Positions 4,639 to 53,637 of a stretch of 64,000 bases of DNA are shown piece after piece; position 1 is the stretch's first letter, and each line of letters opens with the position of its first letter. Origin of the DNA: Macrostomum lignano (lineage: Eukaryota). The DNA is taken from positions 62,001-126,000 of the forward strand of contig NIVC01002522.1 of NCBI GenBank assembly GCA_002269645.1, given 5' to 3'. A model generated the notes under the pieces. The model was not told where the DNA came from. It did no database searches and saw only the letters and a program-made list of their open reading frames with translations. The translations under genes were made by a program, and so were the position numbers.

Positions 4639-4738
4639 CGAGCCGCCCTCCTATTGGCCAACCCCCTCTTTTGGTGCCACGAGCGCCCGGATAATTATCT
4701 ATCTTGTTTCTGCGTTCGTTAATTCAACAACAGAACAT

Positions 4739-4753
4739 TGGCGACGAGGATGG
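4739..4753 (+). other. Primer-binding site complementary to the tRNA-Ser(GCU) 3' end
   Basis: TGGCGACGAGGATGG is the reverse complement of CCATCCTCGTCGCCA, the recalled 3' end of animal tRNA-Ser(GCU); starts 1 nt after the LTR. Confidence 0.8.
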
Positions 4754-7700
4754 CGGCTAGCATCCCTGCACCCACGCCCTTCCTGGCGAACTGCGGATCA
4801 CCGACAGTACCATGGAGCCGATGGATTGAGGCCTTTGAATTTTATTACGAGGCGGCCCAATTCAAGGAGCCCGAAGGGAAGGAAGAGGCGAAACCGCTGA
4901 AGAGGAGCCTTCTGCTCCATCTGCTTGGATTTGAAGGTCAGCGGGTTGCTCGAGCACGCCAAGCAATCAAGGAGAACGACACGTTCGCAGCAACTAAGGC
5001 GGAGCTCGAGAAGATCTTCGGCGAGAAGCCCAACGTGATGGTAGCCAGATATCGCTTCCGCCAGCGCCAGCAGCTACCCGGCGAGGACGTCAAGACCTTC
5101 GTGGCAGCCCTGAGGGAGCTGACGGAGCTGTGCAACTACGGCGCGATACAGGACGATCTCATCAGAGACCAGCTGGCTGAGAAGACCAGTAACCCCAGAA
5201 TCCGAGAGAGGCTGCTGACGGAGAAGGTGGAGGACCTCAACCTGGCGAAAGCGCTCAGCATCGCGGTCTCCATCGAGGAAGCCTCCAAAGAAGCCAAGGC
5301 GATGGCGCCATCAACCTCGAGCACGGCAGCCGTCCAATCGATCCGACAGCCGAGGGGCCAGAAGGTCGCTGCAAAGGGGAGGCACCGCCCAGCACCAGCT
5401 GGCAGGACGGCCAAACCCGGTGGCGCCTGCACGCGCTGTGGGCGAGACCACGGACCGACGACCCCCTGTCCGGCCAAGGGCAAGACATGCGACGCCTGTG
5501 GCAAGAAGAACCACTTCCGGAGTTGCTGTCGCAGCCAGCAGGCTGCTGTCAATGCCGCGGACGAGGTGATCACAGTCTACGCAGTGCCGGGTGGCGACAG
5601 GGAGGTCCGGGCGACGCTGGAACTCGGACCGGACAGGACTGCTGTCAGCCTGATGGTGGACTGCGGCGCAAGGGTGTCGCTGCTGTCCCGACAGACCGCC
5701 GACCGGATCTCAGGTGCAGTCACCTCTCCCACCACGACGAAGCTGCGTGCCTACGGTGGACTGCCGATCCAGCTAAGTGGTGTCACCGAGCTGGAGGTGC
5801 GCTACGGCGACAAGGCGATGCAGCACCGGTTCTTCGTTGCGCCAGGCGGCGACAACATCGTCGGTAGAGACCTGATGGAGAAGCTGGGCTTCCGAGTCGA
5901 CCTTAGCGGGCAGCCGCCCGGAATCGCGGAGGTCAGCGACTTGACGGCGGACTTGCAGGCGCGGTACCCAACGACCTTCAGCGGTGCGATAGGATGCTGC
6001 GCCGGCGCTGTACACCAGCCCAAGGTCGACCCAGCAGCGCGACCCGTCCAGCAGCCACTCCGCCGCCTGCCCCTCATGCGACAGGAGCAGGTCGGTGCCG
6101 AACTCGACAAGATGGAGAAGGACGGCATCATCGAGCGAGTCAACGCTAGCGAGTGGGTCTCCAATCTAGTGGTGACGGCGAAGAAGGATGGCAGCATCCG
6201 AATCTGCGTCGACGTTCGCGGGCCGAACAAGGCACTGATCGTCGACAAGCACCCGATGCCACAGCTGGACGAGATTGCCTCGAAGATCAAGAAAGGCCGT
6301 GGCCGAGTGTTCAGCAAGATTGATCTGAAGTCGGGCTACATGCAGATGCAGCTGCATGAATCGAGCCGCAATCTGACAGCCTTCATCACGCACAAGGGGC
6401 TCTTCCGCTATCGTCGAGTTCCCTTCGGCCTGGCATCGGCACCAGCTGCTTTCCAGCGCATGCTCGACGATCAGGCCGCCGACCTCGACGGAGTGGAGCA
6501 CATCCTGGATGACTTCATCGTGTACGGGCGCAGCGAGGAGGAGCATGATCGACGACTGGAGAAGTTGCTCCAGCGCCTCGAGGACAAGGGCATGACGGTG
6601 AACAAGCAGAAGTGCGCCTTCAAGCAGAAAGAGGTCGAATTCTTCGGATTCGTGATCTCGGAGGCCGGCATCCGGCCAACGGAGTCAGCCACAGCGGCCA
6701 TCAGGGACATCCGGCAGCCCGGAGATCAGAAGGCGTTGAAGTCATTCCTAGGCGCCGCTAACTTCCTGATGCGCTTCGTGCCGCACTACGCCGACATCAC
6801 AGAGCCGCTTCGAAGGCTCCTGAAGGCCGACTCCAACTTCGACTGGACGCCGGAGTGCCAACGGGCGTTCGAAGCAGTGAAGGACGCCATCAGCAAGGCA
6901 CCGACGCTCGCCCACTTCGACCCGAAGGCCGACACTATCGTCACCACGGACGCCAGCGCCAAGGCCATCGGAGCCCAGCTGTCGCAGATCCAGGACGGCG
7001 TCGAGCGACCGGTCGCCTTCGCCGCCCGAGCGCTGACGACGACGGAACAGCGCTACGCCGCGAACGAGCGCGAGGCACTGGCTAGCCTCTGGGCGATGGA
7101 GAAGTGGCATTTCTACCTCTACGGTCGCCACTTCGAGCTGCGCACAGATCATCAGGCGCTGCAGCAGCTGCTTCTGGGACCGACCGGCACGGGACACCGG
7201 CCACTGCAGATTCAAAGGTGGTGCGACCGGCGGCTGCAGTACGACTTCCACGTGCGCTACCTGCCAGGAAACAGCAACTACGTTGCCGATCTGCTTTCCC
7301 GGTGGAGCAGCGGATCGGAGCTAAACCTGATCCACCTGCCCGACACTCCAGGCCCGAGAGTCAAGGCGGTCACACTGGAAGCACTTACCGCAGGGACCGC
7401 AGCCGACGAGACACTGAGGACAGCCATCAGGAGCGTCATTAGCGGCCGGTGGCCAGCTGACATCGACGACGTCGAGCTGCGGGCGCTCTGGAAGGTGCGC
7501 GAACAGCTAAGCGTCTGGAACAACGGCGAATGCCTTGCCTTCCAGGAGAGAGCGGTCATCCCGGAGTCTCTCCGCGGCCATCTTCTCGAGCAGGCTCACG
7601 AAGGGCACCAGGGCATCGTGCGCACCAAGCAGGCGCTCCGCGACTCAGTCTGGTGGCCCGCCATGGACAAGGCGGTCGAGACCTTCGTGCGACACTGCGT

Positions 7701-8274
7701 AGCGTGCGAAACAGCCGAGAAGAACTTTAAGGTCAGTCCGGCCCCGCTCAAGACCATACGCTGGCCAGATTCACCATGGGCAGAGATCGCCGTGGACATC
7801 GTCGGAGAACTGCAGGCGGCGCCGGCCTCTAGCAGGTACCTCATCGTCGTGACGGACCTGCACAGCAAGTGGCCGGAGGTCATCCCGACGGCCAGCATCA
7901 CCACGGAGACCATCTGCCGTGCGATGCGCAGCCTGTTCGCAAGGTGGGGGCTGTGCGAGAAGGTGCTGACGGACAACGGCCCGCAGTTTGGCAGCGAGTT
8001 CTCAGACTTCTTGGCCGAGCAGGGCATCCGGCACGTCAAGACCAGCCTCTACCATCCGCAAACCAACGGCCAGACGGAGCGTCTCAATCGGTCGCTACTC
8101 GCCAGCATCAGAGCGGCCATGGTGGAGAACAGGCCGTTTCAAGACGCCGTGACCAACTTCTTGTCTGCCTACCGGAGCTCCAAGCACAGCCTGACGGGCA
8201 AGTCACCGGCCGAGCTCATGCTGGGTCGGAAGTGGCGCACCGCGATCACCATGCTGTCTCCCGGAGGGGAATGA
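4750..8274 (+). CDS. Gag-Pol polyprotein (1174 aa from ATG 4750)
   Basis: Two CCHC knuckles (CTRCGRDHGPTTPC, CDACGKKNHFRSCC); protease VDCGA; RT RICVD / KIDLKSGY / PFGL / ILDD; RNase H TTDAS...RTDH; integrase H-H-C-C (AHEGHQG...CVAC) and core DIVG / TDNG / ERLNR. Confidence 0.96.
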   Translation: MAASIPAPTPFLANCGSPTVPWSRWIEAFEFYYEAAQFKEPEGKEEAKPLKRSLLLHLLGFEGQRVARARQAIKENDTFAATKAELEKIFGEKPNVMVARYRFRQRQQLPGEDVKTFVAALRELTELCNYGAIQDDLIRDQLAEKTSNPRIRERLLTEKVEDLNLAKALSIAVSIEEASKEAKAMAPSTSSTAAVQSIRQPRGQKVAAKGRHRPAPAGRTAKPGGACTRCGRDHGPTTPCPAKGKTCDACGKKNHFRSCCRSQQAAVNAADEVITVYAVPGGDREVRATLELGPDRTAVSLMVDCGARVSLLSRQTADRISGAVTSPTTTKLRAYGGLPIQLSGVTELEVRYGDKAMQHRFFVAPGGDNIVGRDLMEKLGFRVDLSGQPPGIAEVSDLTADLQARYPTTFSGAIGCCAGAVHQPKVDPAARPVQQPLRRLPLMRQEQVGAELDKMEKDGIIERVNASEWVSNLVVTAKKDGSIRICVDVRGPNKALIVDKHPMPQLDEIASKIKKGRGRVFSKIDLKSGYMQMQLHESSRNLTAFITHKGLFRYRRVPFGLASAPAAFQRMLDDQAADLDGVEHILDDFIVYGRSEEEHDRRLEKLLQRLEDKGMTVNKQKCAFKQKEVEFFGFVISEAGIRPTESATAAIRDIRQPGDQKALKSFLGAANFLMRFVPHYADITEPLRRLLKADSNFDWTPECQRAFEAVKDAISKAPTLAHFDPKADTIVTTDASAKAIGAQLSQIQDGVERPVAFAARALTTTEQRYAANEREALASLWAMEKWHFYLYGRHFELRTDHQALQQLLLGPTGTGHRPLQIQRWCDRRLQYDFHVRYLPGNSNYVADLLSRWSSGSELNLIHLPDTPGPRVKAVTLEALTAGTAADETLRTAIRSVISGRWPADIDDVELRALWKVREQLSVWNNGECLAFQERAVIPESLRGHLLEQAHEGHQGIVRTKQALRDSVWWPAMDKAVETFVRHCVACETAEKNFKVSPAPLKTIRWPDSPWAEIAVDIVGELQAAPASSRYLIVVTDLHSKWPEVIPTASITTETICRAMRSLFARWGLCEKVLTDNGPQFGSEFSDFLAEQGIRHVKTSLYHPQTNGQTERLNRSLLASIRAAMVENRPFQDAVTNFLSAYRSSKHSLTGKSPAELMLGRKWRTAITMLSPGGE

Positions 8275-11010: not shown

Positions 11011-11537
11011 TCCCTCCGCTCCCTCCTACCCCCCCCCCCTGCTCACACTCCTCTCCTCAGCTGCCTGATCCCAGCCACTATTCTGCAATCGGCAAGGAGC
11101 TGACGCAAGTGCTATAGCATGCCCCTCCCGCATAATTTGATCCATAATTGCAGGACAAAGAGTTTACAGCTCTCCATCTCAAAGTTGAGCGGGACGCACC
11201 TGCCGCAAGGTTTGCTGGTCTCTGCTAGTGCATCATCAAGCAGGCGGATCTGCCTTCAAGTCAAAGAAGCCGACAGCTGATTGGCTTATTAATTATTTTT
11301 TACAGAATTAATTGTCATACATTGCACTCAAATTGAGCTCCACATTATCCTCCGTATTAGCCTGCGCGGATTAGTCTTTGTTCCCAGCCTAGCGGGCTTG
11401 AAGGAATAGAGCTTGATTCTACACTGCAATGACCTTGCAGTGACCCTGGCCTACCAATCAACCAGACCTGCAAAGCCTATAATAACTCTGAGTCTTTGTT
11501 CCAGAATCATCCGCGTGCGTTATTATATAATTAGAGC

Positions 11538-12510
11538 ATGTCCCATTCTATCTCATTGCATGTCCCATTCTATCTCATTGCATGTCCCATTCTATCTCAT
11601 TCCATGTCCCATTCTATCTCATTGCATGTCCCATTCTATCTCATTGCATGTCCCATTCTATCTCATTGCATGTCCCATTCTATCTCATTCCATGTCCCAT
11701 TCTATCTCATTGCATGTCCCATTCTATCTCATTGCATGTCCCATTCTATCTCATTGCATGTCCCATTCTATCTCATTCCATGTCCCATTCTATCTCATTG
11801 CATGTCCCATTCTATCTCATTCCATGTCCCATTCTATCTCATTCCATGTCCCATTCTATCTCATTGCATGTCCCATTCTATCTCATTGCATGTCCCATTC
11901 TATCTTATTCCATGTCCCATCATATCTCACTCCATGTCCCATTCTATCTCATTGCATGTCCCATTCTATCTCATTCCATGTCCCATTCTATCTCATTGCA
12001 TGTCCCATTCTATCTCATTGCATGTCCCATTCTATCTCATTGCATGTCCCATTCTATCTCATTCCATGTCCCATTCTATCTCATTGCATGTCCCATTCTA
12101 TCTCATTCCATGTCCCATTCTATCTCATTCCATGTCCCATTCTATCTCATTGCATGTCCCATTCTATCTTATTCCATGTCCCATTCTATCTCATTCCAGT
12201 TCCCATCATATCTCACTCCATTTCCCATTCTATCTCACTCCATGTCCCATCATATCTCATTCCATTTCCCATTCTATCTCACTCCATGTCCCATCATATC
12301 TCATTCCAGTTCCCATTCGATCTCACTCCATTTCCCATTCTATCTCATTCCATGTCCCATCATATCTCACTCCATTTCCCATTCTATCTCACTCCATGTC
12401 CCATCATATCTCATTCCATTTCCCATTCTATCTCACTCCATGTCCCATCATATCTCATTCCAGTTCCCATTCGATCTCATTCCAGTTCCCATTCTATCTC
12501 ATTCCATTCC
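11538..12510. repeat. 22-bp minisatellite (CATGTCCCATTCTATCTCATTG/C)n
   Basis: Visible tandem units, more degenerate at the 3' end. Confidence 0.95.
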
Positions 12511-13189
12511 TACTTGGCATTGATGCGGATCAATGTCTTACCTCACGCTTGGCAACGCATACACAATGACAGATGCAATGCTTCAACGCTGTGACCTCAT
12601 CCATTTGTGCTACGAGTTAAAAGCCCATCAAAGCATCGATAAGACCTCCATGAACTCGATTCGGCATGCTTTCGGATAATCATCTGTGGCATTCTCGAGT
12701 TGATGCCAAATCTAGCCCAGACTCTTTTTGTTCTGAGCCACTCGACTGACAGAATTAGAGTTCCTTTGTTTTCGGGGAGCACTTGGGGGGTGGGGGGTTA
12801 GGAGGGGAGGACATAAAGAAGTCACAACTGACAGAGAGAAAGTGGCTTCTCACTATCTCACTATTACGTAATCCTCAGATTTATTCAAGCCGATGTGGTT
12901 GCCGTAAAGCCCACGAAATCTCCCATTGATGGCATGCATCCAGACTGGGATTAAAAAAAGCAAGTAAAGCGAAAAAACATAACTCAATGCACCCTGTGAG
13001 TCACGTGGCATTAAAGACATTTAGAAACCGCTGACACTCATATGACAATCTCTGGGGGAATGAGGTGGTGCAGAGGGATGAGAATAGCTAAAATAGAACA
13101 ATGAGCCCCTGGGAGTGCTGCAGTGGGACAACCATGGATGAGAAGGGATCATACAGCTCCGGTAACAAGAGAAAAGAGGAAAAGAGAAA

Positions 13190-16646: not shown

Positions 16647-19600
16647 ATGGCGGCCCTGCGCCGACGCCTGATGCAGGCCCGCGCCGACGCGGCCGCCGAT
16701 GCCGCCGCCACCGCCGCCAAGGAAGACGACGACTCGTTCGACGAATTGATCAGCCGATGGAGCTGGGCCGACGATGACGAGGATAAAGACAAAGACAACG
16801 ACAACGACAAGGACAACGAAGACAGAAGAAGCAAATACTGGGAGAAAGTCGATGTCTCAGAGAAAGTCGAGGCGAAGGCGGAGTTGCGACCGCTCGGAGT
16901 CGATTTAATCAGCGCGTTGCCAAGCGCCACTGGCGATCGCGGAAGCGCCGCCAGCCACGCAGTTTGGTTCGAGAAGCCGGTTGCTAGGCAACAGCCCAAG
17001 CTGCCTGACACTGATGAGGCGCCTGCGGCCAAGGCCAAGGCTGAGAACGGAGAGGGGCTCATTCGAGTGGTGAGTTGTTCTCAACTGTCTCACTCTCACC
17101 TGTCTCACTCTCACCTGTCTCACTCTCACCTGTCTCACTCTCACCTATCTCACTCTCACCTATCTCACTCTCACCCGTATAACTCTCACCTGTCTCACTC
17201 TCACCTGTCTCACTCTCACCTGTCTCACTCTCACCTGTCTCACTCTCACCCGTATAACTCTCACCTGTCTCACTCTCACCCGTAATCACTCTCACCTGTC
17301 TCACTCTCACCCGTAATCACTCTCACCTGTCTCACTCTCGCCTGTCTCACTCTCGCCTGTCTCACTCTCACCTGTCTCATTCTCACCTGTCTCACTCTCA
17401 CTCGTATCACTCTCACCTGTCTCACTCTCGCCTGTCTCACTCTCGCCTGTCTCACTCTCGCCTGTCTTACTCTCGCCTGTCTCACTCTCACCTGTCTCAC
17501 TCTCACCTGTCCTCACTCTCACCTGTCTCACTCTCACCTATCTCACTCTTAACTATCTAACTCTCACCTATCTCACTCTCACCTATCTCACTCTCACCTG
17601 TCTCACTCTCACCTGTCTCACTCTCACCTGTCTCACTCTCACCTGTCTCACTCTCACGTATCTCACTCTCACCTGTCTCACTCTCACCCGTAATCACTCT
17701 CACCTGTCTCACTCTCACTCGTATCACTCTCACCTGTCTCACTCTCGCCTGTCTCACTCTCACCTGTCTCACTCTCGCCTGTCTCACTCTCACCTGTCTC
17801 ACTCTCACCCGTAATCACTCTCACCTGTCTCACTCTCACTCGTATCACTCTCGCCTGTCTCACTCTCGCCTGTCTCACTCTCACCTGTCTCACTCTCACC
17901 TGTCTCACTCTCACCCGTAATCACTCTCAATTGTCTCACTCTCGCCTGTCTCACTCTCGCCTGTCTCACTCTCGCCTGTCTCACTCTCGCCTGTCTCACT
18001 CTCACATGCTGTTTTCACAAATCACTCTTAAAGTGATTCAATCAAACCATTCTCAACTTTGGTCACCCTCACGTGAAAGCTTAATCTGTGTAACATTATA
18101 TTCAATACTACTCCTGGCTATTAGTACATACGAATGACACAATCTTCATCACAGGAGGGTTCGAAACGGGCAATAGAAGACAACGGAGCCGTACCGAAGA
18201 CCGCCGACACCATCAGGACTGTCCAGGATGGCGGCGCGTCAGCTGACCTTCTGTCAGACTCCGCCACAGCTTCCGCAACCGTCAAAGCGGCCTCATCAAC
18301 CACAGACGACGACCGCGACTGGCACGGCGGCGTTGTTGGAGTCGAAGTTCGCTACGGCGGCGGCGCTGGAGTCCAGGTGGACGGCAATCTCGACGACTGG
18401 GAGCTGCGGCTGGTGGCTGAGGCCGCTGAACCGGGCCTCAATGAAGCTGGCGACGAGAGGGACGGCTCGAGTTTTGCTGGGCTGGTGCGTGAGAAAACAA
18501 ACTGACTGACTGACTGACTGACTGACTGACTGACTGACTGACTGACTGACTGACTGACTGACTGACTGACTGACTGACTGACTGACTGACTGACTGACTG
18601 ACTGACTGACTGACTGACTGACTGACTGACTGACTGACTGACTGACTGACTGACTGACTGACTGACTGACTGACTGACTGACTGACTGACTGACTGACTG
18701 ACTGACTGACTGACTGACTGACTGACTGACTGACTGACTGACTGACTGACTGACTGACTGACTGACTGACTGACTGACTGACTGACTGACTGACTGACTG
18801 ACTGACTGACTGACTGACTGACTGACTGACTGACTGACTGACTGACTGACTGACTGACTGACTGACTGACTGACTGACTGACTGACTGACTGACTAACTG
18901 ACTGACTGACTGACTGACTGACTGACTGACTGACTGACTGACTGACTGACTGACTGACTGACTGACTGACTGACTAGCCAACTAACTAGCTAACTAGCTA
19001 AAAAAGTTGCGATTGAAAAACCAGCAAGTCATTAATAAATGCTTGAACTTGATGTTTATCCAGTCAGGGCCAGTGTCCGCAGCAGTGGCCGACCTACAAG
19101 ACGAATTTTGTGCTCCAGTGGACTCAACAGCGGGATTCCCGCCGCCACCGACTTCTCAACGGGGCTCGGCTCAGCGGGTGACTTCGCGCCCAAGCCAGCG
19201 ACCCGCTCGAGTGTCTGGAGGCTCGGCTGTCCCAGTAGCCGGCATGTACGAGTAAGATTAAATTAGTTTATTCCTAATTAGTATCTCCAACTGCTTGTAC
19301 AGTGCTTGCACCTGCCCTGCCGACAGTCTGATGGGCGACCACCGGCTCAAGAAGCTGCTGCTGAGTCTGCCGAAAATCCGACCGCCGGACCTGCGGGCGA
19401 TTGCGGCTCGACTTTTGAGGGCTAGGGACAGACGCAGGATCAGGTGACACGGGAAGGGGGGAAATGGGTACTCAGCCTCAGTCACCACTCAAGCAGAGAG
19501 TCTGGAGGTCAGTAACCCCACTCACCTATAGAGCCTGGAGGTCAGTGACCCCACTCACCTGGAGAGCCTGGAGGACAATGACCCCACTCACCTATAGAGC

Positions 19601-22240: not shown

Positions 22241-23150
22241 ATAGCAGCGTCGATCTTGTCACTAATTTTATTTCAGCGAGAAATAGTGACAGAGCTGTCC
22301 GGCTGTCACTGTGAGCTCACTTGAGCTGTATAGATTGGCAGAGTCACGCACAAAGACAGTGCAAGCTCAGGCAATGGCAACAGAAGTTGCTTGTTAGTCA
22401 AATAAGATACAATTGAGTTGAGAAGATCCTCGCCGGAATCCTGACTAGCCATAAAATATCCCTACTAATTAACTCATCAGAAAATTTGCACACTTTGCAG
22501 ATGTCAGAGAAGAAACACTGTTTGATTGAAAGTTTTATTCAACAATCAAGTAAGGCAAGCAGTTAGAAGACAATTTAGCTCAGTTTACTTGATCAGAATT
22601 GCGGCCGATCGCAATTTGAAAGATTTATTTTCATTGAGATGGACAGGCAGTTCCGCTTTTATCAAGCGTTCAGTTTCAAAAACTAAGGAGCAACGGAGAA
22701 GCAAGGGGGGGGGGGAACAGTAGTTAGATGAGAGGAATTTCCCCACTTACAAGCGCATATTCTTTTCTAAAAATAGAAAACTTCTGGCCAATCAGAGTAA
22801 AGCAGGGCATTCCCTGCCTTTTGCATTTTTTAAAAACAGCACGTCCCAGCCAATCAGAGTGAATCGGGGTTTCTCCATTTTAGCCGGTTGCTAAAAATAT
22901 CCCTCCTTGCTTCCTGCGATCTGCTGCACTGCAACGCGATTAAAAGTGCGTCAAATTCTTTTCAAAACTTTTAACTAGCGAACCGCTTGAAACAAGTTTA
23001 GTTAAATTAGACCAAAATCGAGCTCTTTTAATTAGAATTAATTTAAGGGTCAGGGGTCAGATTAGAAATCTGACGGAACGCATTAGGTTTTTCGAATTTC
23101 AGGTGTTATTGTCCCCAGATATCGGCCGAAATGGCAGCTGTTCGGTCAGC

Positions 23151-26099
23151 TTATCGCCCGTAGCAGCTGATTGGGTGCAGGATGCACCGGTAGTCCATGC
23201 GTCGTTTCCGCCGCCGGTCCATCTGCGACTGCAGTCGGTGCTGCCACCAATCCCGGTCTGGCGACGGCGTCTGCTGCGGCTGCTGTCGCTGTTCCAACTC
23301 GGCTGCTGCATCCTTGGCTGCGTCTGCCGAGACTGCCTGCTGGAGTTCATCGTTTCATAATCAGTGACTGAACAGCGAAGTTCGAACAACTTTAAAACTG
23401 CTTGCTTCGGGACCGCCGCTTTTTCTCTTCCGTCTCTCTAAAACTTGCTGCATTTCCCGCTTTGGCTTCCCCTCTCTCCCTGGCTCCCCCTCTCTCCCTG
23501 GCTCCCCCTCTCTCCCTGGCTCCCCCTCTCTCCCTGGCTCCCCCTCTCTCCCTGGCTCCCCCTCTCTCCCTGGCTCCCCTCTCTCCCTGGCTCCCCCTCT
23601 CTCCCTGGCTCCCCCTCTCTCCCTGGCTCCCCCTCTGTCCCTGGCTCCCCCTCTCTCCCTGGCTCCCCCTCTCTCCCTGGCTCCCCCTCTCTCCCTGGCT
23701 CCCCCTCTCTCCCAAGATTGATATTGAATAAGTATCTTAGCTAGCATTATATGTAGCTTCTCCAATAATTAAACATTTTTTTACAGCTAAACAGTGTTTA
23801 AACAGTGCAACATAAGCTTTTTGATTTGATAAAGTATTTTATGCCGTTATAAAAATCAAAGCGTTGTCCTTAAATTAGTTTACAGCTAGAATAGGAGTAA
23901 TTAAATATTGATAACTATTGATATATTGTTAATATACTTGCAAAAAATATACACAAAATACGCTTCAAAATACTGTAAGTGAGTGCATGCAGAGCTGTAG
24001 AGTAGGACGGATAAATACGTAGGTAGGTAGGTAGGCAGGTAGGTAGGTAGATAGGTAGGTAGGTAGGCAGGTAGGTAGGTAGATAGCTAGGTAGGCAGGT
24101 ATGTAGGTAGGTAGGTAGGTAGGTAGATAGGTAGGTCGGTAGGTAGGTAGGCAGGTAGGTAGGTAGGCAGGTAGGTAGGTAGGTAGATAGGTAGGTAGGT
24201 AGGTAGGTAGGCAAGTAGGTAGGTAAGTAGGTAGATAGGTAGCCAGGTAGGTAGGTAAGTAGGTAGGAAGGTAGGTAGATAAGTAGGTAGGTAGGTGATA
24301 GGTAGGTAGGTAAGGTTAGACATTGATAGCATAAACCTTCATCCACCCTATTGAATTCTGATCACCGCAGCTCATCTACTTGAATGGCAGAACTAATTAA
24401 CAGGTAGCACAGAGAGGAGAGAAGCGAGGAAAGCGGAAACAAAGTGAAGACAAGTCGCTCAGTCTTCTAGAAGCAGGAGAGCCAGCCGGACAGAGTCTGA
24501 AACTTATCTGGCAGCATTGCTTTCAATCAGCCAAATTTAGACTTGCAGAAAGAAACATCGGGCTCAAGAAGACAGAAAGCCAGTCTGGAGACGGCCCCTC
24601 AGCCAGCCTCAGTCAGCCAATAAATAACTTTCTTTATACTTCCATTCGGATTTCTGCTTTCGATGAGAAAAGCGCAGTTGATGAGATTTGGAGATGAGCT
24701 CTGGAGCTGACTGAGTCACTCCTTCCTGACTCGACTGCCCGGGAAATAATGGGAAAAAGTCAAGATAGACCAAAATTAGAAAAGTGGTGGATAGGGGGAT
24801 ATTCTCCCATTTGGTGCAAAGTTTATTGTTTGGGAATTCAAGTCTAAGAGATCATTCGGTAATCTATGATGACTGTTCGGTAATCTTTGATGAGACTGTT
24901 CGGTAATCTATGATGAGACTCTTCGGTAATCTTTGATGAGACTGTTCGGTAATCTATGATGAGACTGTTCGGTAATCTATGATGAGACTGTTCGGTAATC
25001 TTTGATGAGACTGTTCGGTAATCTTTGATGAGACTGTTCGGTAATCTATGATGAGACTGTTCGGTAATCTTTGATGAGACTGTTCGGTAATCTATGATGA
25101 GACTGCTCGGTAATCTTTGATGAGACTGTTCGGTAATCTATGATGAGACTGTTCGGTAATCTTTGATGAGACTGTTCGGTAATCTATGATGAGACTGCTC
25201 GGTAATCTTTGATGAGACTGTTCGGTAATCTTTGATGAGACTGCTCGGTAATCTTTGATGAGACTGTTCGGTAATCTATGATGACTGTTCGGTAATCTAT
25301 GATGACTGTTCGGTAATCTATGATGAGACTGTTCGGTAATCTATGATGAGACTGTTCGGTAATCTTTGATGAGACTGTTCGGTAATCTTTGATGAGACTG
25401 TTCGGTAATCTATGATGAGACTGTTCGGTAATCTTTGATGAGACTGTTCGGTAATCTTTGATGAGACTGTTCTGTAATCTTTGATGAGACTGTTCGGTAA
25501 TCTTTGATGAGACTGTTGGGTAATCTTTGATGAGACTGTTCGGTAATCTTTGATGAGACTGTTCGGTAATCTATGATGACTGTTCGGTAATCTATGACGA
25601 GACCGTAGCCCAGTGGTCTGGCGCGGCCCTCCGATGTGCCAGCGGCCCAGGCTCGATTCCAAGTGTAGTCACATTAATTTGGGGCTGAATTGGAATCTCG
25701 GCCTGGCTCTGCTCGTGCAATTAACGCCCCTGATGGCCAACCCCCAAGGCACAGTGAAGTGTACATGCCTAACGATAAATAAAGTCCGGGCCGCTGTACA
25801 CTCCTGTGTGAGTGTGGGCCTGTGCGTATGACTGCGTACCTATCCGCGCTTGTGTGCTGCTCAGGGGAGTCGGCGGAATGGGCAGCAATGCCTCTCGCCG
25901 GTTGTGTGCCTATGTCGCTTAAAGTGCGCCAGGGTGCAAACACAGACATCGAAAACAGAGTCTTGCACAAAAATAGTCAAAGTTCAATTGGCTCTCTCAC
26001 CCAGAAGGACTGCCGAACTCTCCCAGCGGTGCTGGCGGTCCCCGGCTGCTGACTCAGGGCCAGCACGAGTAAAATCAGAAATAGCGCCGTGACCTTCAT
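23151..26099 (-). CDS. AstC: Allatostatin-C-like (PISC / somatostatin-family) neuropeptide precursor
   Basis: Signal-peptide exon 26099-26001 MKVTALFLILLVLALSQQPGTASTAGRVRQSFW (acceptor TCTTCCAG, donor GTGAGA). Terminal exon ends ...QMD-RRRKRR-MDYRCILHPISCY-GR* (peptide 23198-23160, stop 23153-23151), with C-x6-C and PISC as in AstC. Possible middle exon 25909-25840. Last junction unresolved. Confidence 0.8.
23470..23713. repeat. 18-bp tandem repeat (CCCTCTCTCCCTGGCTCC)n
   Basis: Visible tandem units. Confidence 0.93.
24018..24312. repeat. (AGGT)n microsatellite
   Basis: Visible. Confidence 0.95.
24853..25600. repeat. 23-bp minisatellite (CTGTTCGGTAATCTTTGATGAGA)n
   Basis: Visible tandem units. 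Confidence 0.95.
25601..25830 (+). mobile_element. tRNA-headed SINE, family B
   Basis: Box A TAGCCCAGTGG (25606-25616), box B GGCTCGATTCC (25650-25660); 3' segment GTGTACATGCCT...GGCCGCTGTACAC is shared with the 42440-42620 copy. Confidence 0.65.
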
Positions 26100-26867
26100 T
26101 GTCTGGAAGACGATCGTAAGATTAAGTTAAAAATAAAAATATTCTAGTGAAGGAATCCTACTTTACAATCTGTCTCATCAAACAGCAAGCACCGCATGCT
26201 ATGGATATTTTCATTCTTGTGCCTGTACACACCAAAAAATACCGAGCAAAAGTTACATGGACTTTTCTAGCTAAGCATCTGGATTGGAGACAAAAAATGA
26301 CTCGATTTTTTAGCAACATGAGGCCATGGTTTTCAAGCCCAATTGAGTAAGGCAGAACCGATTGTCTATTCATAAGCTTTATCCACCCAGTTTTGACCAT
26401 AAGACTTCTGTTTCATTTAATTAATTTTCTTCTCATCCAGTTTAGTTGATTTCATTTGAGTTCGAATTGCGGGAAATCTATGGCCTCATGTTTTCAAAAC
26501 TCTGGGCAGAGCCTTCCGGTCCAGATGCCAGCTTGAGAAGTCCATGTCTCGGGAATTTAATTCCTGGCCATAGACAGCTCCTCTGCTCGCTGACCGCTGG
26601 CACAAATTTAATTCAAGAAGCAGTTTAAGCCCCAGATTCTATACACCCCAATACACAGCACTGCTGTCTATGGCCAAAAGTCTCTAAATATAGACTACAG
26701 ACGTATCGAATCCATATTGTCTATGGCTACGTTATAGCGAGTATCACGAGACGGAGTCCTAACCAAAATTTGTGCCTTGACAACGAATTGAGCACTTGAG
26801 TGAGATAATTAAACTGAATGGCTATTTTCGAGTCATACTTCTAAAGCATAGATATGCTATCAGAAAC

Positions 26868-27160
26868 AGTATGTCAGTGTGTCTATGGTTGTTTAATGTC
26901 AATGCAGTATGTCAGTGTGTCTATGGTTGTTTAATGTCAATGCAGTATGTCAGTGTGTCTATGGCTGTTTATTGTCAATGCAGTATGTCAGTGTGTCTAT
27001 GGCTGTTTAATGTCAATGCAGTATGTCAGTGTGTCTATGATTGTTTAATGTCAATGCAGTATGTCAGTGTGTCTTTGATTGTTTAATGTCAATGCAGTAT
27101 GTCAGTGTGTCTATGATTGTTTAATGTCAATGCAGTATGTCAGTGTGTCTATGGTTGTTT
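26868..27160. repeat. 38-bp tandem repeat (CAGTATGTCAGTGTGTCTATGGTTGTTTAATGTCAATG)n
   Basis: About 7 visible copies. Confidence 0.92.
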
Positions 27161-27216
27161 TATGAAAATTCGGAATTTAAAAAATTGAACTTTATTAAAA
27201 GAAGTGACTTCCTCAC

Positions 27217-27288
27217 CTGGAGCCCGTGGGTTGCTGCTTTTGATTGATGCTTAGTACCAGCTAGAACGGTCTGAGTCAAATATTTATA
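27217..27288 (-). promoter_or_regulatory. TATA box and short non-coding first exon, probably of the AstC-like gene
   Basis: Minus-strand TATAAATA at 27288-27281; CCAG/GTGAGG donor at 27216; the next acceptor at 26103 precedes ACA-ATG. Confidence 0.55.
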
Positions 27289-27571
27289 AATTTTTCTGCG
27301 CTTCAGGCCGCCTCGATCGCAGGTTTAGGATATTTCTCCCTCCCTACGCAGAGATAGATGCAGTAGTTATAGGAAATTCCTATTCCTATAGCCAATAGGA
27401 AGGGAGGCTGGGAGCGGCCTTGTGATGAAGAAATATCCTTTGTTGATGAGACGGTAACTCCTTTAAAAATTGGCAAGTCAAGCGGAAATGCCACAGAAAA
27501 TTGGAGTTGCTGATGTTGGCCCAGTGAGCTGTGACAGCCCGAAGATTGGGGCCCATGTGTTCTAAAACCGG

Positions 27572-38235: not shown

Positions 38236-39760
38236 AAGCCAGTTAAAAGTGCCTGCGTGCAGTTGAATTTTATGCGGTAAGATATAAAACCCTTAACACT
38301 TTCACAACGCTTGCCGCAATTCTCTCTCTGAGTTTTATTTATTGCCAACATGCATATCTTCCATGCAGTTTCCAACTTGCTGATTTCTCCTCCTTTCCTA
38401 GAATCTACATTCGAGCCTTTTGAAGTTCAAGCTGCCTCCGCCCATACGTGAAATATAGATATTTATTCACCCCGCGGGGAAAAAGGCTTTCAGCGCCAAG
38501 GCGCAATAATTGTATAGAATTTCGGCTGTCTCCAAGTGAGGTCGTGCCCCCCCCCCCCCTATTTGGCGCTTTGATGCAACTCAAATAGCTCAGAGCTTTG
38601 GCACCAAATTGCTCTGTTTTCAACCTATTGCATATACAGCGGCTTCTGGGCCTTGGCAGTGGGTGGTCGTTATTGCCTTTTTGTAGCACTTCTGCTCTCC
38701 GGCTGGCAAGAAGGCGGAGGGATCAGGTTTGGGGCACTAAATTATGTTTCAGAAATGTTTCAGAAGTTTTCCAGCCGTTAACCCCCCCTCTCTCTCTGCC
38801 TCACCTCAAATCATGCGATATATGCTCGATGGGTTTAGGAGAGCGGAGAGGCTGGCTCGCAGCAGCAGCAGCACCGCAAAAGTTCCGACAGTTTTACAGC
38901 GCCCCTGTCAGGCCCGATTCTTCACTCCTGGTTCTCTCCCGGTTGCCGCTTTGCAGGTAAAAAAGTGGTTAATCGAAAAAATAACAAAATAAACAACACA
39001 AAAAAGTTGCCGACAAAAAAGAGGCCAGACAGACTTCCTCGCAGATCTATCGCATTACTGCATGCAGTCCAGCTGCACTACCGGGCGTGTTTAAGGCGCA
39101 TATTATTAATATGAAGTTGAATAGAGAGGCTGCATATATTCGAGTTCGTGAATGATATATGATGCAGGTCGCTAGTCTGTCACTGAGTCCTCGCGCTAGA
39201 ATATTGGAGCTGAGTTTGTCTAGTTCAAGATGACTCCCCCCAGCAGCCTCGGAGCCTCATCTATTCAGTTTATGGTAGTTCTTGAAATTTATTGCCATTC
39301 AGGCCTGCATTTGATTATGGAAGTTTTTTCTGTCTCTCCGCCTGAGTCACTGACTAGCCCCGGTCCGCTCCAGCAAAACAGATACATTACAGCTCTGCTG
39401 CCTGCTTGCCTCCTCGGCCTCTTAAATCTTATTTCCCCGCGTAGACAAAAATTTGGTTCATTAATTTAGATATATAGATTCGTGCTTTCTTGTTGAAGAG
39501 GAGCGAAGACCGCCGACAATCCCGCATGCACGGGCGGGCGCTGGCTGCTTGGAGGATTGCAAATACGTTTTTACTCGAATCAAATTGTAGCTAATACCGG
39601 AGAGAGAAACTGTTTTAAACTTTTTTTATTTGACAGAATTGGTTCCGCGACAGTTTATGCTGGAAGCATCTTAAACTTAACAAAGAATCATCTTTATTCA
39701 CTTGTGCCCGCCCGCACCTGCATTTCTGCTCTACAGCAGGCATCCGCCCGACTCATCAGG

Positions 39761-41016
39761 ATGTCGTCGCCTACGCCGCAGGGGCAGCAGCAGCAGAAGC
39801 GCTCAGCCAGCGCCGAGCTGCCCTCCGCCTTCAGACCGCCACCAACAGCCTCCGCCACCGCCGCCGCCAGCTCTGTACCGCCGAAGAAGCGGGCCAGAAA
39901 CCATCAGGACGGGGAGCCGGAGCCCGGAGCCGCGTCTCCTCTGGACCTGTCTACACCTGCCAGTTTAAGCCGGAATGCTGCTGCTAACGCTGCGGAACCG
40001 GATGTCGATACCAGCGACGACCCGGAAGCTGTTCGTCACGGTGTGTCTTCGTCTGCCGCAGCTGCAGCGGCGGCCTACATGGCCCGCTGCGCTGAGACAT
40101 TCCGGACGATGAACTCCACAGCATCGGCTGAGGAGCCCGCAGTCACATCAGCTGCCGACTGCTGGACGGCCATGAACCAGTGGCAGGCCTCTTTGCAGGC
40201 TCAGTACCTGTACTATTCGTCTCTGGCCCTCTCCGGCCTGGTGCCACCGCTGCCGCCGCAGCCGCCACCGGCACCGCAGCAGCTCCAATCGACCGCCGCT
40301 GGCCCCAAGCTGCACCACGCCGCAGGCATCTTGTCGCCAGGCTTCAGCAGCCTCTTCTCGTCGCTGCAGATTCCTCCGCCACCGCCGCCACCACCAACGT
40401 CGTTTCCAGCGACGGTGCCACAGGCTTCGAGTCTGGCTGCATCGGCTTTGGCGCAGTCTCAGCGCTCAATTCAAGAGGATTCGCCGAGTCCGTCCAGGCG
40501 GCAGCAGCTGACGCCTCAGCCGAACCCGTCATCGTCATCAGCCTTGACACAGCAGCAGCAGCAGCGCCGCATAAAGGCGACCAGAGCAACACCTGCCGCG
40601 AGCATCCCAGCGCCCGTGATTGCCGCAGCAGCCGCCGCCGCTGCCGCCGCTGCCCCGCCGGGCAGTTCCAAGGCGTCGCCGCCGTCGTCAGTTTTCCCAA
40701 CTACTGAGCGGCAGTCGAGCGGCGAGACCGACTTTCAGTGCTCCTGCGGCCGGGCTTTTGCCAGCCTCATCAGCCTGACGCTGCACCTGAAGGAGACTGG
40801 CCACGGACCGGGAGTCGCCTGCGGCCGCGACCGCGACATCCCCAAGCTGGTGCGCGGCCAGGACATGTGGATCAACTCCGAGACGGAGCAGACCAGAGAG
40901 ATTCTGCGCTGCATCCGCTGCAAGCAGAGCTTCCGCACCCTGCCGGAGCTCACAATGCACATGATGAAGACTCGGCACTATACGGAGATCATCTACACGG
41001 ATTCGGCGCCGTCCCA

Positions 41017-41047
<31 letters not shown>

Positions 41048-42277
41048 CAACAGCAAGCAGGCACTGGGTCTTCTGCAGCGGCTCGATTTCCTTCGGTGGG
41101 TAAGGACGAGCGCCAAGCAGCAGCGGCTGCAGCTGCCGGTAAGGAGCGAGCAGGACAGCAGCAGAGCCGCGGTAGCCGCGCGGAGGTGAAAGAGGCAGAC
41201 TCCGCCACCGATCCCCAGCAGCAGCAGCGAGCGGGCGGCGCTACCAGCACCCTGCAAAAGATGCAGCACTTTGTGGAAGCCAGTCTGCCTAGGCCGGGTC
41301 TCCGGCGGCCGGGCATGTTTCAAGAGGTGCTACAGAGCTCCGTGTTCGACGGCAACGAGCGAAGCGGTGGCACCGGCGCCGGGGCCAGCGGCGGAGACTC
41401 TGACAACGACGACGAGCGCCGGGAAGGTGACAGCGGCGGTCTCGGCGCGGCGGGCAGGGACAGCGTGAGCTATCTGAGCCCGGACAGGCCGACCGAGCAG
41501 AAGGAGAACCCGCTGTCCTCGCTGCAGAAGCTGGTGGACACCGCCGAGAAGCCGTCGGCCGGGTCCGCTGCCGCATCTGCCACATCGGTCGCATCCGCCG
41601 CCGCTGCTCCTGCGATGTCTCCGTCGTTGACGCCACCAGCTTCGGAGATGACATCATCAACAGCCAGACCGGAAAGTCCGGCAGTCTCAGCCGCCGCATC
41701 GGCCGTCAGCAGCAGGCATACGGTGATCATGCTGAGCCCAACGTACATCTACCAGAGCGGCCTGTACCCATCGGGATTCCCCGTTTGCCACCCGTCGGCG
41801 CTGGACCTGTCCAAGCTGCAGCAGCGCTCTGATGAAACTTCGCCGCTGAAAAAGTCTACCGCGGCATCTACTGCTGCCGCTGCCGTCTCCTTGGCGCCTG
41901 TCGCGTCGTCGGGTTCGACAACGGCCGCGTCGCTGCCAGCAACCAGCGGTGCGGAGCCGGCGGCTGCCGACAAGCCGACGAGCGCTTGGCCGGACTCGCT
42001 GATGCAGAAAAAGGCCAAGTGCCACTACTGCAGCAAGCCGTTCGCCAACAAAGGTCAGGTGCGCCTGCACGTCAGCAAGGGCAAGTGCCCCAGCCTGCTG
42101 GCCCGCCTGCCCACCGCCGCGCTGCCGCCGTTCCCCTTCTTCCCGGCGCTGGACTACATCAAAGCGGCAGGTCGCTTCCATGCCGCCGCCGCTGCCGCCG
42201 CCGCGGCCGCCTCCGTGGCATCAGCGACAGCACCTTCGGGCGGCTCAACAGCTGCAGGCAAGGAGTTGCAGGCCTGA
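39761..42277 (+). CDS. tsh: Teashirt/tiptop (TSHZ) family zinc-finger transcription factor, 838 aa in one exon
   Basis: C2H2 fingers FQCSCGRAF...HLKETGH and ILRCIRCKQSFRTLPELTMHMMKTRH joined by the tsh-diagnostic KLVRGQDMW linker; NPLSSLQKLV motif; CtBP-type PLDLS and ALDLS; terminal finger KCHYCSKPFANKG. In-frame acceptor CTCTACAG at 39736 implies an upstream exon. Confidence 0.88.
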
Positions 42278-46080: not shown

Positions 46081-47213
46081 GTCAAGTTCGTCATCAGAAA
46101 CTCATGGTCACCCGTCTAGGAGAGGTCAAGACCCCTGTGACCCCTCTTGGATGCACCACTGGTTGGAAACTATTGTAACAGGACTGACAGGCAGAACAGA
46201 GGGAGGGCAACAGGCGGCATTGTTGTGAACATTGAGCGGCAGACCATCATCGTCCACTGTATTCCCCCAAGGCCTACTTCCTTTTTGATCTGGCCCGCTG
46301 GGGCACTTGCCAGTTGGAGAAGAATTTATATATTGTTCGCCGCTTCCCTTCATCTCTTTGAGCTTCGCTCATCCTTCCATCTCCCGGCCCGGCGCGCGGC
46401 TTCATCAATCAGCGGAATCGGCCCCATCGTTTAACTTGTCAACCTCGCCAGCCTCTCTGGGCCTTGGACGCCTGGTGGCTCTTTTATCGCCGCGGGCTCT
46501 CATAGAGCTTTGCCTATCCGATAGAAGAGGAGAGATGGCTGCCGGGGCCAACGCGCGTGGATCAGTTAATCCTGGGAGCGCTGCCCTCCCCTGAAGCCGA
46601 TTGATTTAGGGCCCACCTCCCCATGCGCCGTTTGCGTCTCCCTCTGTCTGTTGTTAGCCGGCGGTACTGATAGGGGGGGAGAGATATGGGAAGCGGTGCT
46701 GCCGGCCAAGGCTGCCGGGGGTGGGTCTTTATTTTCAAGTGATCTATGGCTTCCTCCGATTCGGTCGGCTATAAGGGGGGGGGCGGCGGACGGACACCGC
46801 AAACAGAATGCGTGTGTGTCGCCACATGTCTGATTTATGGTCACCCGGCACCCCAATCTCCGATCCACGCCAGCTGACCGGGGTCCCGACCGACTCCCAT
46901 CGGAGCATCAGGAGCTACTCGACCGACTAAAAGCAGTTTTAGATGCAAAGTTTTTTAAAACCTATTCGAGCTACAAGGTATTAGCCCGTGTAGCTCCTGG
47001 GTAAAGCTGTAATATCGTAAATCCGGAATTCGATAACAATTTTCTGTCATTTATTGTAGCCTTATGCATTGCTTTGAGAACTTCCGATACTGCTATTCGA
47101 TTTCTTGCGCTAATTTACCCCTTTTTGTGCAGATATGAGCGTGGCATCAACAATACAAACCCACTACTTGCCAAGATCCTACTTCCAGTAGCGACTGAAG
47201 CTACTGTAATGAA

Positions 47214-47950
47214 ACTGACTGACTGACTGACTGACTGACTGACTGACTGACTGACTGACTGACTGACTGACTGACTGACTGACTGACTGACTGACTGACT
47301 GACTGACTGACTGACTGACTGACTGACTGACTGACTGACTGACTGACTGACTGACTGACTGACTGACTGACTGACTGACTGACTGACTGACTGACTGACT
47401 GACTGACTGACTGACTGACTGACTGACTGACTGACTGACTGACTGACTGACTGACTGACTGACTGACTGACTGACTGACTGACTGACTGACTGACTGACT
47501 GACTGACTGACTGACTGACTGACTGACTGACTGACTGACTGACTGACTGACTGACTGACTGACTGACTGACTGACTGACTGACTGACTGACTGACTGACT
47601 GACTGACTGACTGACTGACTGACTGACTGACTGACTGACTGACTGACTGACTGACTGACTGACTGACTGACTGACTGACTGACTGACTGACTGACTGACT
47701 GACTGACTGACTGACTGACTGACTGACTGACTGACTGACTGACTGACTGACTGACTGACTGACTGACTGACTGACTGACTGACTGACTGACTGACTGACT
47801 GACTGACTGACTGACTGACTGACTGACTGACTGACTGACTGACTGACTGACTGACTGACTGACTGACTGACTGACTGACTGACTGACTGACTGACTGACT
47901 GACTGACTGACTGACTGACTGACTGACTGACTGACTGACTGACTGACTGA
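47214..47950. repeat. (GACT)n microsatellite
   Basis: Perfect run of ~735 bp. Confidence 0.98.
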
Positions 47951-48675
47951 GTCCAAGGCCAGTGGCGGCCAGTTCAAAGGAGCGCATAAATGCTTAGCTC
48001 TCAGTTCTTGCGCATCAGAAATTCAGAAGCTGTGAGTTGCTTTTGCAACAAAAAGTTTAATCGAATTAATGCGAAGGTCGCCAAGGAGACGCGGCCACTG
48101 CCAATAGGCGGTCTTGGAGCGACCCGCGTGGGAAATTCCCAAGCTGAGGCCAGCTGATTTGCAGAATATTATTATTGCTCAAAATCTGATTGTGACAAAA
48201 AGCAATCAAGTGAGGAGCTCTGCTTCTCAAAGAACAATCGCTTATTGCGGACGTCTTGGTTGGCATGGCAACGCAGCGGGCCATGATTGAAGCTTTGATT
48301 GACAGGCCAGCTGGCAGCGGCTCAACTGCTGGGCAAACAAGCAGCCGGGCTTGGGCTTAATCACGCTCAAAAACACGGCGTGCATGGATCGATGGAGAGT
48401 GGAATTCGGAGCCGAATCGGAGGAATCAATTACACACCCAGGAGAAAATTTCCACCTGCTTTCTGAATTATTCCTGACTAAAGCATCCAGAGACGGATTG
48501 GGGAGCCACTGGCGCCAACCCGTTTGGGATTAGAGTATAAGGCCTGAGACCTTTTCGAGTCGTCCAATCAGCCTCCATTGCTACTGGCTTGCCAGACAGA
48601 AGAAGCAGTACAAAAATACGTCAGCACAGAAGGTTTCGAGAGCCTGAGAATACTGAGAAGCAGCAGCTAATCGAC

Positions 48676-51760: not shown

Positions 51761-52909
51761 TTTTGTCTGTCTTGCATATACGAGTATACTCGTACTTCAG
51801 TATTTGTGTACATCGAGTTGTTCTCGATGCTTATTGTTCATTCCTAAACCCATATGCTCCCGAGGCCGCAAACCCGGAAGGAAAGGAATTTTTTTAGCTG
51901 TCACATTAAATTTAAGTGACACTGCACAGCGAAACTACAAGTAGACGCTACACTTTTTAGACAACTTTGAAAGACATATCTAGTTATTCTACCACGAAGT
52001 AGTATCTGTGAGTACACAGATCTGTCTGTATAACAATTAAGGGTAATTCTAAAGCTGAGAAATTTCCTACATGCGGTATTGGAAAGCAGACAAAAGTTGC
52101 ATTTTTGTGTGCGACCTAACATTGTGATGCGGGAATGTGATCCTAAATTTACAACTTAAAGTAAAACATTTTGAAAGGGCAAGGGCCAATTAATCACATT
52201 GGAGGATTGTGGGTAGACATAACCATGGACACTCCAGCCATTCGACCACAGCTAGGTTAAAAGCAAAAAACTCAGACAAGAAGGCATGATTAAAATGTAT
52301 TTTACTACACTCGGGCAGTGAAATCTGAGTGAAACTTTACGAGTGCAAATTTAACGACCTTCACAACCGGGGTCGTTGTGATGCACATTTATTGTTGCAT
52401 AATTCTAGTATGAATATACATACCTGTGCTAATAATAAATAATAGTACGTATAAAATATGCACAGTACACATTAGTCAATATAACTGTCTGTATTCGGTA
52501 CTAGAAGCTAAGCGTCAGTGTCAGTAGTAATTATTGAAATTTGCTAAAGCTTTTTCAAAAAGACAAATGGTTAAATTGTATTTTCGATGCAAAGGCCTAC
52601 AATGGATTCAGAGTGGGTGGTTAGCACCAGCTAAAATTGAAAAAAATCGACAAACAGGTCAATGCATTCTAACAAGAAAATGTAATTTCTAAATGTTGGT
52701 AAGCAGTGAGCTGGAAGCTTGCAAAAATACAGTAAATTAGCTTGAAAACATGTAAAAACGGTATAAATTTTTGCAGAGAAGGCACTTCAACAAAATTTTC
52801 TAAACTTTCTAACAAGTATTTATCTGATACGTTGTCAGCTTCTTAGCCATATGAGTGACAACAATTATCAAATAATTTTCTTTTATCACAGAAAAACAGG
52901 ACGTGTGTG

Positions 52910-53182
52910 TCTGAGATAGCTGAATCTCACCTATGAGATAGCTGAATCTCACCTATGAGATAGCTGAATCTCAAATATGGGACAGCTTAATCTCACCTAT
53001 GAGATAGCTGAATCTCACCTATGAGATAGCTGAATCTCACCTATGAGATAGCTGAATCTCAAATATGGGATAGCTGAATCTCACTTATGAGATAGCTGAA
53101 TCTCACCTATGAGATAGCTGAATCTCAAATATGGGATAGCTGAATCTCACTTATGAGATAGCTGAATCTCACCTATGAGATA
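52910..53182. repeat. 22-bp minisatellite (GAGATAGCTGAATCTCACCTAT)n
   Basis: Visible. Confidence 0.93.
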
Positions 53183-53637
53183 CATTAAAATCTAGATTTT
53201 TATACTCAGTTTGAAGTAAAAAATAAAACAACAACAGGGATATGTGAGCCAGATAAAAAGATGCATATGTACATAATTAATTGAATATTGATTACTAACT
53301 TAAAAATTACTCTGATTTCCTAAAACCGTATCAGTGTAAAATTAGCAAAACTAATTTGCTAGATACTCCTTTAATGAAAATAGATCCGAAACACCAAAAA
53401 ATTCTTTACACTGCTGTTCGAACGGCAAAAAAAACTTTGCGGGGAAACAAAAAGAGAAGGCACAAATAGAGCAATTGATACTACTTGTTTAGTAGCAACA
53501 TGCAAAAGTTCACAGCTATAAGGACACAAATACAGACAGCAGATGGCACAGCACAGGACTAACAAAAGCAAAAGTCAAAATAAAAGAAGTTAGAAATGAT
53601 AAGAAACAGCACAGGCCCGCTGCAATGGTAGCACTGA

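Follow-up and report, generated by a model that had tools for sequence, protein, structure and literature searches.

The 64,000-nucleotide window analysed here (positions 62,001 to 126,000 of the forward strand of contig NIVC01002522.1, Macrostomum lignano assembly GCA_002269645.1; coordinates below are those of the window) carries a spliced gene on its minus strand that, judged from its sequence, probably encodes an allatostatin-C (AstC)-type prepropeptide, the precursor of a small secreted hormone. In our reading of the window, two coding exons joined by a 2.66-kb, repeat-rich, phase-0 GT-AG intron specify a precursor of 94 or 95 amino acids, whose C-terminus reads RRRKRR-MDYRCILHPISCY-GR-stop. 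The original prediction, made from the letters of the window, had described a TATA-like motif, the exons, the RRRKRR run and a peptide followed by Gly-Arg and a stop codon on this strand, and all of these elements are present where it had placed them.

The first coding exon (26001–26102, minus strand) follows the acceptor cttccag/ACA (slashes mark splice sites), has its ATG at 26099 and supplies 33 codons, MKVTALFLILLVLALSQQPGTASTAGRVRQSFW, before a phase-0 donor, TGG/GTGAGA. Approximately the first 22 residues (26034–26099) form a predicted signal peptide. By a rule-based reading, it has a classical n/h/c layout, with the n-region MK and a 13-residue hydrophobic core, VTALFLILLVLAL, with a mean Kyte-Doolittle value of 3.18, and cleavage is predicted after GTA22 or TAS23, with small residues at -3 and -1. 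The coding intron (23340–26000) lies in the pro-region, between codons 33 and 34, and carries three tandem-repeat arrays: a 23-bp unit repeated 33 times (24855–25603), GTAG repeated 74 times (24019–24312) and an 18-bp unit repeated 14 times (23463–23713). A tRNA-like stretch had been suspected within this second intron of the gene; it proved unsupported, with no ARAGORN or Rfam match in the whole window.

The terminal coding exon (23151–23339, stop codon included) encodes (Q)AVSADAAKDAAAELEQRQQPQQTPSPDRDWWQHRLQSQMD, an acidic, Gln-rich spacer, followed by RRRKRR, the peptide, Gly-Arg and the stop codon TAA (23153–23151). The RRRKRR run, residues 75–80 of the 95-residue form (23199–23216), is a predicted polybasic prohormone-convertase site. 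The predicted mature peptide occupies residues 81–93 of 95 (23160–23198), with its Cys85–Cys92 loop at 23186–23163, and the Gly-Arg tail ahead of the stop codon (23154–23159) is a predicted signal for carboxypeptidase trimming and amidation. A candidate poly(A) signal, ATTAAA, is found 118 nt past the stop codon (23027–23032). The exon opens at a tandem NAGNAG acceptor, ccag/cag/ (23336–23341), whose two sites, 23339 (which adds Gln34) and 23336, would yield isoforms that include or lack Gln34. Public gene models use the downstream site, 23336, and the 95-residue form is absent from the protein collection.

The longest unspliced piece of the gene in the list of open reading frames (ORFs) is a 48-residue ORF with a TTG start, and the ORF that does occupy the region, on the plus strand at 23103–23360, is an 85-residue frame with a GTG start lying opposite the terminal exon, an antisense shadow, just as it had originally been interpreted. 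The gene had accordingly been described as hidden. This holds for the prokaryote-style ORF list, which missed it, but not for public annotation, where it was already present. The spliced product shares 97% identity with a 94-residue M. lignano “hypothetical protein BOX15_Mlig009589g1/g2” (PAA75984.1, PAA80541.1), encoded on two other contigs of the same assembly, NIVC01000575.1 and NIVC01000851.1, and the exact 94-residue product of the window copy is UniProt entry A0A1I8HTR2, named “Allatostatin”. At the database level the gene is thus already known, and since its exact protein is held by UniProt as “Allatostatin” and its GenBank counterpart is listed as a hypothetical protein, the gene itself is no discovery.

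These records also bear on whether the two coding exons are joined. The coding sequences (CDSs) of the two annotated copies use the same ATG, donor and stop codon as the window copy, and an acceptor of the 23336 type. The annotation of the assembly draws on RNA-seq data that had been assembled into a genome-guided transcriptome (Wudarski et al. 2017, PMC5730564), so that the exon-exon junction is transcript-supported in both annotated copies. The proposed link between the exon at 26001 and the exon at 23151 is therefore matched by the same junction in two public, RNA-seq-derived gene models.

The availability of three genomic copies allowed a comparison of the parts of the gene. The window locus is collinear with both GenBank loci. 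The CDSs differ at 2 of 288 nucleotides (99.3% identity); both differences are non-synonymous and both fall in the spacer, where the window copy has Pro and Thr in place of the Leu and Met of PAA75984.1 and PAA80541.1. All three copies have the same signal peptide and mature peptide, and the first coding exon, with which the annotated CDS begins in the other two copies, is 100% identical there. Outside its repeats, the coding intron is 93.4–97.5% identical, with 42 of 1309 nucleotides mismatched as against the 2 of 288 in the CDS (Fisher p=0.016), and the 251 nt 3′ of the stop codon are approximately 99% identical between copies. The span from ATG to stop is 2949 bp in the window and 3659 and 3579 bp in the other two copies, which is probably explained by differences in copy number of the tandem arrays. 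The two annotated copies are closer to each other than either is to the window, sharing the same protein and the same mismatches, while the window differs from them by 1–6%; this closeness fits the partial genome duplication known for the DV1 line.

Could such a locus be non-functional, that is, a chance pair of ORFs, a mis-assembled transcript or a decaying duplicate? Its product is small, the M. lignano genome is very rich in repeats and in part duplicated (Wudarski et al. 2017, PMC5730564), and neither of the differences between the coding sequences of the copies is silent, all of which would suit this explanation. However, all three genomic copies retain an intact ORF, the splice sites and the cleavage motifs, the CDS varies less than the intron, the public models derive from a transcriptome, and the coincidence of motif and precursor position, quantified below, lies far beyond chance. 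We consider a non-functional locus very unlikely, and a chance ORF was rejected because the public models are transcript-based, the copies are conserved and the motif statistics speak against it.

Upstream of the coding exons, the gene model is plausible from sequence features. A TATA-like motif, TTTATAAATA (27281–27290, minus strand), is read as a putative core promoter, and a putative short non-coding first exon (27217–27255) would begin some 25–30 nt past it, a guessed 5′ end, and finish at the donor CTCCAG/GTGAGG after 27217. The putative first intron contains a 38-bp minisatellite of 7.8 copies (26867–27164), which brings the tandem-repeat arrays in the two introns to four. The stretch holding the TATA-like motif and the putative exon shows 1 mismatch in 159 nt relative to the two annotated copies, the motif itself being identical; the donor GTGAGG is kept there, and the last exon bases read TAG, not CAG. 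The unique sequence of the first intron adjoining this stretch is just as conserved (99.3%), so this conservation does not discriminate between a real 5′ exon and neutral similarity. Spliced-leader (SL) trans-splicing at the acceptor at 26103/26102, which precedes the ATG by 3 nt, is an equally open alternative to the non-coding exon. In M. lignano, SL trans-splicing affects about 39% of genes (Wudarski et al. 2017, PMC5730564), and the acceptor next to the ATG could be such a site.

We then considered how the precursor compares with the AstC family. According to Koch et al. 2022 (PMC9048919), the loop of protostome AstC peptides always has six residues, it begins with an aliphatic residue in molluscs and annelids but with an aromatic one in arthropods and nematodes, and a phase-0 intron in the pro-region is common to all genes examined. 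The flatworm loop, C85-ILHPIS-C92, has six residues and begins with an aliphatic one, and the phase-0 intron is present in the pro-region (TGG/GTGAGA ... CAG/). The peptide occurs once, at the very end of the precursor, where only GR and the stop codon follow; AstC precursors have the same layout, with nothing but Gly or basic residues past the peptide. RRRKRR, which takes the place of the KR/KKR site of known AstC precursors, ends four residues ahead of Cys85, and in those precursors KR lies 4–6 residues upstream; the residue directly past the second Cys, Tyr93, is aromatic. Overall, the proposal of a spliced gene for a secreted AstC-type precursor with a Cys loop agrees well with these observations, the exons being joined in PAA75984.1 and PAA80541.1 and the loop size, position, cleavage site and intron phase all fitting the family.

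To quantify the resemblance, we built an AstC-core hidden Markov model (HMM) from 16 known AstC cores of molluscs, annelids, a brachiopod and insects, with no flatworm sequence among them. Of the 2612 segments obtained by six-frame translation of the window, the flatworm peptide scored highest (13.9 bits, E=0.005). When the same model was run on 2x10^7 random residues, the best score was 12.9 bits, compared with a domain score of 13.1 bits for the candidate, and none (0) reached the candidate. As an order-of-magnitude estimate, a chance coincidence of the motif with a C-terminal position directly behind a polybasic site, in a short protein that has a hydrophobic leader, would be expected with a probability of about 10^-4 or less per proteome. 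A second AstC-like gene was also sought, on the model of the arthropod AstC/CC/CCC cluster, but the AstC-core HMM detected no second AstC-like exon in the 64-kb window; the next matches were translated minisatellites. A full-length profile of six lophotrochozoan AstC precursors likewise placed the candidate first, here among 7612 sequences that included 5000 shuffles.

Several results nevertheless weigh against assignment to AstC. The full-length profile score was 10.2 bits (E=0.29), barely above composition-matched shuffles, and, as the alignment covers no more than the cleavage site and the peptide, whole-precursor homology is not demonstrable. An exhaustive phmmer search of 1.84x10^9 representatives returned only the protein itself, with no orthologues or paralogues, and Pfam and NCBIfam held no relevant family for the precursor. 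The loop Asn common among AstC peptides is replaced by His88. The UniProt name “Allatostatin” may come from automatic naming. Family membership, as read from the sequence, thus rests on a motif of 13–20 residues plus the architecture of the precursor. In the same vein, a word-indexed search of 5.8x10^9 proteins with the spliced precursor recovered only the cluster of the M. lignano protein itself.

These observations could also be explained by a lineage-specific Macrostomum Cys-loop peptide, serving as a hormone, a pheromone or in defence, that acquired its AstC-like end by convergence and acts on another receptor or on none. Such a peptide would be expected to lack homologues, as the phmmer result has it, to give an insignificant full-precursor profile and to miss a near-universal loop Asn, and short disulphide loops evolve easily. 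Failed whole-precursor searches are, however, common for short neuropeptide precursors in general. Convergence would also have to produce together an exact six-residue loop, an aromatic residue past the second Cys, an arthropod-like PIS, a mollusc-like aliphatic start and Tyr, one copy only, set at the very C-terminus behind a basic site, a pro-region intron in phase 0 and a motif score unmatched in the random residues. We regard this explanation as unlikely, and a member of the AstC family remains our preferred assignment.

A comparison with known precursors showed where the flatworm peptide stands within the family. In the list of AstC-like precursors given by Li et al. 2021 (PMC8514136, Suppl. 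Fig. 1C), every entry carries one peptide, placed last, after KR: KR-SHYMCLVNLIACY-RKK in gastropods, KR-GHIQCLVNLVACY-GKRK in the scallop, KR-QHVACLVHVLSCY-KKRR in the chiton, KR-QRIACQVWIVSCF-GK in Lingula, KR-QPVQCLVNIVSCW-KRK in Platynereis and KR-...YRQCYFNPISCF-RK in Drosophila and Tribolium. The corresponding end of the M. lignano precursor is RRRKRR-MDYRCILHPISCY-GR. Its resemblance to the lophotrochozoan precursors extends to their overall design: approximately 95–140 residues, a signal peptide (predicted in the flatworm), an acidic, Gln-rich, helical-looking spacer, a KR-type site and then one terminal peptide of 13–15 residues, with a C-x6-C loop and an aliphatic start. The residue past the second Cys is Tyr in all listed molluscs (...ACY), as in the flatworm, whereas it is Trp in Platynereis and Phe in Lingula and insects. 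Similarly, the Gly and basic tail of the flatworm precursor have precedents in the scallop (CY-GKRK) and in Lingula (CF-GK), the other tails being basic. The differences are also clear: core identity to any single peptide amounts to only 3–5 of 13 residues, the loop reads ILHPIS as opposed to LVN(L/V)(I/V)A, the cleavage site is a six-residue polybasic run in place of KR, and the N-terminal S/G-H motif of the lophotrochozoan AstC-like peptides is absent.

The flatworm peptide also shares features with arthropod AstC of the Manduca/Drosophila type (...RQCYFNPISCF), namely the C-x6-C loop, an identical PISC and one copy at the C-terminus, preceded by a dibasic site. An Arg stands near the first Cys in both, immediately ahead of it in the flatworm and one residue earlier in arthropods. 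Unlike the flatworm loop, the arthropod loop starts with the aromatic pair Y-F, has Asn where the flatworm has His, and is followed by a terminal Phe. Arthropod AstC proper is not known to be amidated. AstCCC, an arthropod paralogue of AstC, has a precursor ending in Gly and basic residues and a C-terminally amidated peptide; the gene triplication that gave rise to it is reportedly arthropod-specific, and any shared amidation would for this reason be parallel and not orthologous.

The comparison further clarifies two residues that the original prediction had singled out as unusual, the loop His and the terminal Tyr. That description needs correcting. Tyr is the molluscan norm, and the peptide of the chiton Acanthopleura, CLVHVLSCY, has His at the Asn position, as in the flatworm. 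According to Koch et al. 2022 (PMC9048919), the loop Asn is found in “most” AstC peptides, and none of the motifs is strictly conserved. His88 is not a disqualifying feature for AstC membership, because Acanthopleura has His and Lingula has Trp at that position. Both residues appear odd only when set against arthropod AstC.

Two other families of loop peptides were weighed. The first is the CCHamide/excitatory peptide family. In CCHamides, too, the loop spans six residues and leads into an aromatic residue and Gly, so that the C-x6-C-Y-G-R of the flatworm recalls their ...C-x6-C-W/Y-G-x-H-amide. They adjoin the signal peptide, are followed by a long C-terminal pro-region and end in a His-amide. 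The flatworm peptide, in contrast, is the last element of its precursor, 58 residues past the predicted signal peptide, and ends Y-G-R; it lacks both GH(S/V)C and the terminal His, and it scores as AstC, the profile used being that of AstC. Membership in the CCHamide/excitatory peptide family is highly improbable, and we rejected it on motif and precursor position.

The second family comprises the true somatostatin and urotensin II peptides and their SSRP-like relatives, of which the gene could in principle be a flatworm orthologue. It shares with them a general design: a small precursor that ends in a disulphide-loop peptide, with a phase-0 intron interrupting its pro-region (Koch et al. 2022, PMC9048919). 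However, somatostatin-type peptides carry an (F/I/L/V)WK motif, their loop has 4 residues (urotensin II and SSRP-like) or 10–15 (somatostatin), and a phase-1 intron lies inside the peptide. In protostome SSRP-like genes specifically, the loop has four residues with a conserved WK, and there are three exons, the mature peptide being split by the phase-1 intron (Koch et al. 2022, PMC9048919). The flatworm loop has six residues and no WK, its peptide lies wholly within the terminal exon, and its sole coding intron is in phase 0. We rejected this reading on loop size, the absence of the WK motif and intron phase, and find it scarcely credible. The same comparison qualifies the original label of “AstC/somatostatin-like”: AstC type is the part that stands, while the somatostatin link is contested, Koch et al. 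2022 (PMC9048919) arguing that AstC is a paralogue and not an orthologue of somatostatin.

If the gene is indeed of AstC type, its product would be processed along the general neuropeptide pathway. The leader would direct the precursor into the secretory pathway and be cleaved after residue 22 or 23, a prohormone convertase would cut after RRRKRR, a carboxypeptidase would remove Arg95, and PAM would convert Gly94 to give a C-terminal Tyr-amide. With a Cys85–Cys92 disulphide, the predicted product is a cyclic 13-mer, MDYRCILHPISCY-NH2, with a monoisotopic mass of 1609.720 Da and a calculated [M+2H]2+ of 805.868; without the amide, the cyclic form would have a mass of 1610.704. Following the same pathway, it would be released from neurons or endocrine cells, and its predicted target is a rhodopsin-gamma G-protein-coupled receptor (GPCR) of the AstC/somatostatin-receptor group. 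AstC and somatostatin-type receptors fall in the same rhodopsin-gamma group (Koch et al. 2022, PMC9048919), and GPCRs resembling SSTR and AstC receptors (SSTR2-like) have been reported in the planarian Schmidtea by BLAST and neighbour-joining (PMC10725132). By analogy with AstC elsewhere, the peptide would probably be an inhibitory modulator.

We found no description of a flatworm AstC peptide in the searchable literature, and the gene identifier Mlig009589 appears in no paper found there. The comparative papers within that literature leave the phylum out, and flatworms are unmentioned in Koch et al. 2022 (PMC9048919). McVeigh et al. 2018 gave allatostatin ligands as unreported in flatworms, somatostatin-type peptides are entered as “unknown” in a 2022 helminth review, and a 2026 review, in its list of polyclad peptides, has allatostatin-A among those identified and does not name AstC. 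On balance we lean towards regarding the M. lignano product as the first AstC-type peptide of Platyhelminthes to be recognised comparatively, an amidated 13-mer that mixes the arthropod PISC with a molluscan aliphatic start and Tyr. As an identification it is correct but ordinary and would leave a specialist unsurprised, because AstC reportedly exists in the majority of protostome phyla (Koch et al. 2022, PMC9048919).

If true, the assignment places AstC signalling in a phylum missing from current evolutionary schemes of somatostatin and AstC, and it supplies a concrete candidate ligand, with a predicted mass, for deorphanising the SSTR/AstC-like GPCRs of flatworms. If confirmed, it would have a modest bearing on the orthologue-or-paralogue question for AstC and somatostatin and on neuropeptide targets in parasitic flatworms. 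M. lignano is tractable by transgenesis and RNA interference, making the function of the peptide directly testable.

Beyond this gene, the window contains other long reading frames. An uninterrupted 1178-residue ORF at 4738–8274 (plus strand) matches the Pfam aspartyl protease, reverse transcriptase, RNase H and integrase families; it is the pol region of a Ty3/gypsy-type long terminal repeat (LTR) retrotransposon and looks intact. A second uninterrupted ORF, of 557 residues (48589–50262, plus strand), gives a full-length match to the amiloride-sensitive sodium channel family, DEG/ENaC (Pfam ASC, E=4.6e-46), some lophotrochozoan members of which are peptide-gated. At 39557–42277 (plus strand), a 906-residue ORF in a GC-rich stretch (66% GC) has several weak C2H2 zinc-finger matches, all under Pfam cut-offs. 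Other long “ORFs”, including those at 47115–47987, 18352–18981, 16647–17285 and 11413–12594, have odd Pfam matches (phage Gp5_C, DUF445, Pentapeptide, WhiB). These matches have zero or scattered significant stretches, and the frames look like translated tandem or low-complexity repeats and not like genes. ARAGORN and Rfam found no tRNA or other Rfam family anywhere in the window. Its composition is uneven: the last ~12 kb (52000–64000) are AT-rich, with 32–37% GC compared with 44–66% elsewhere.

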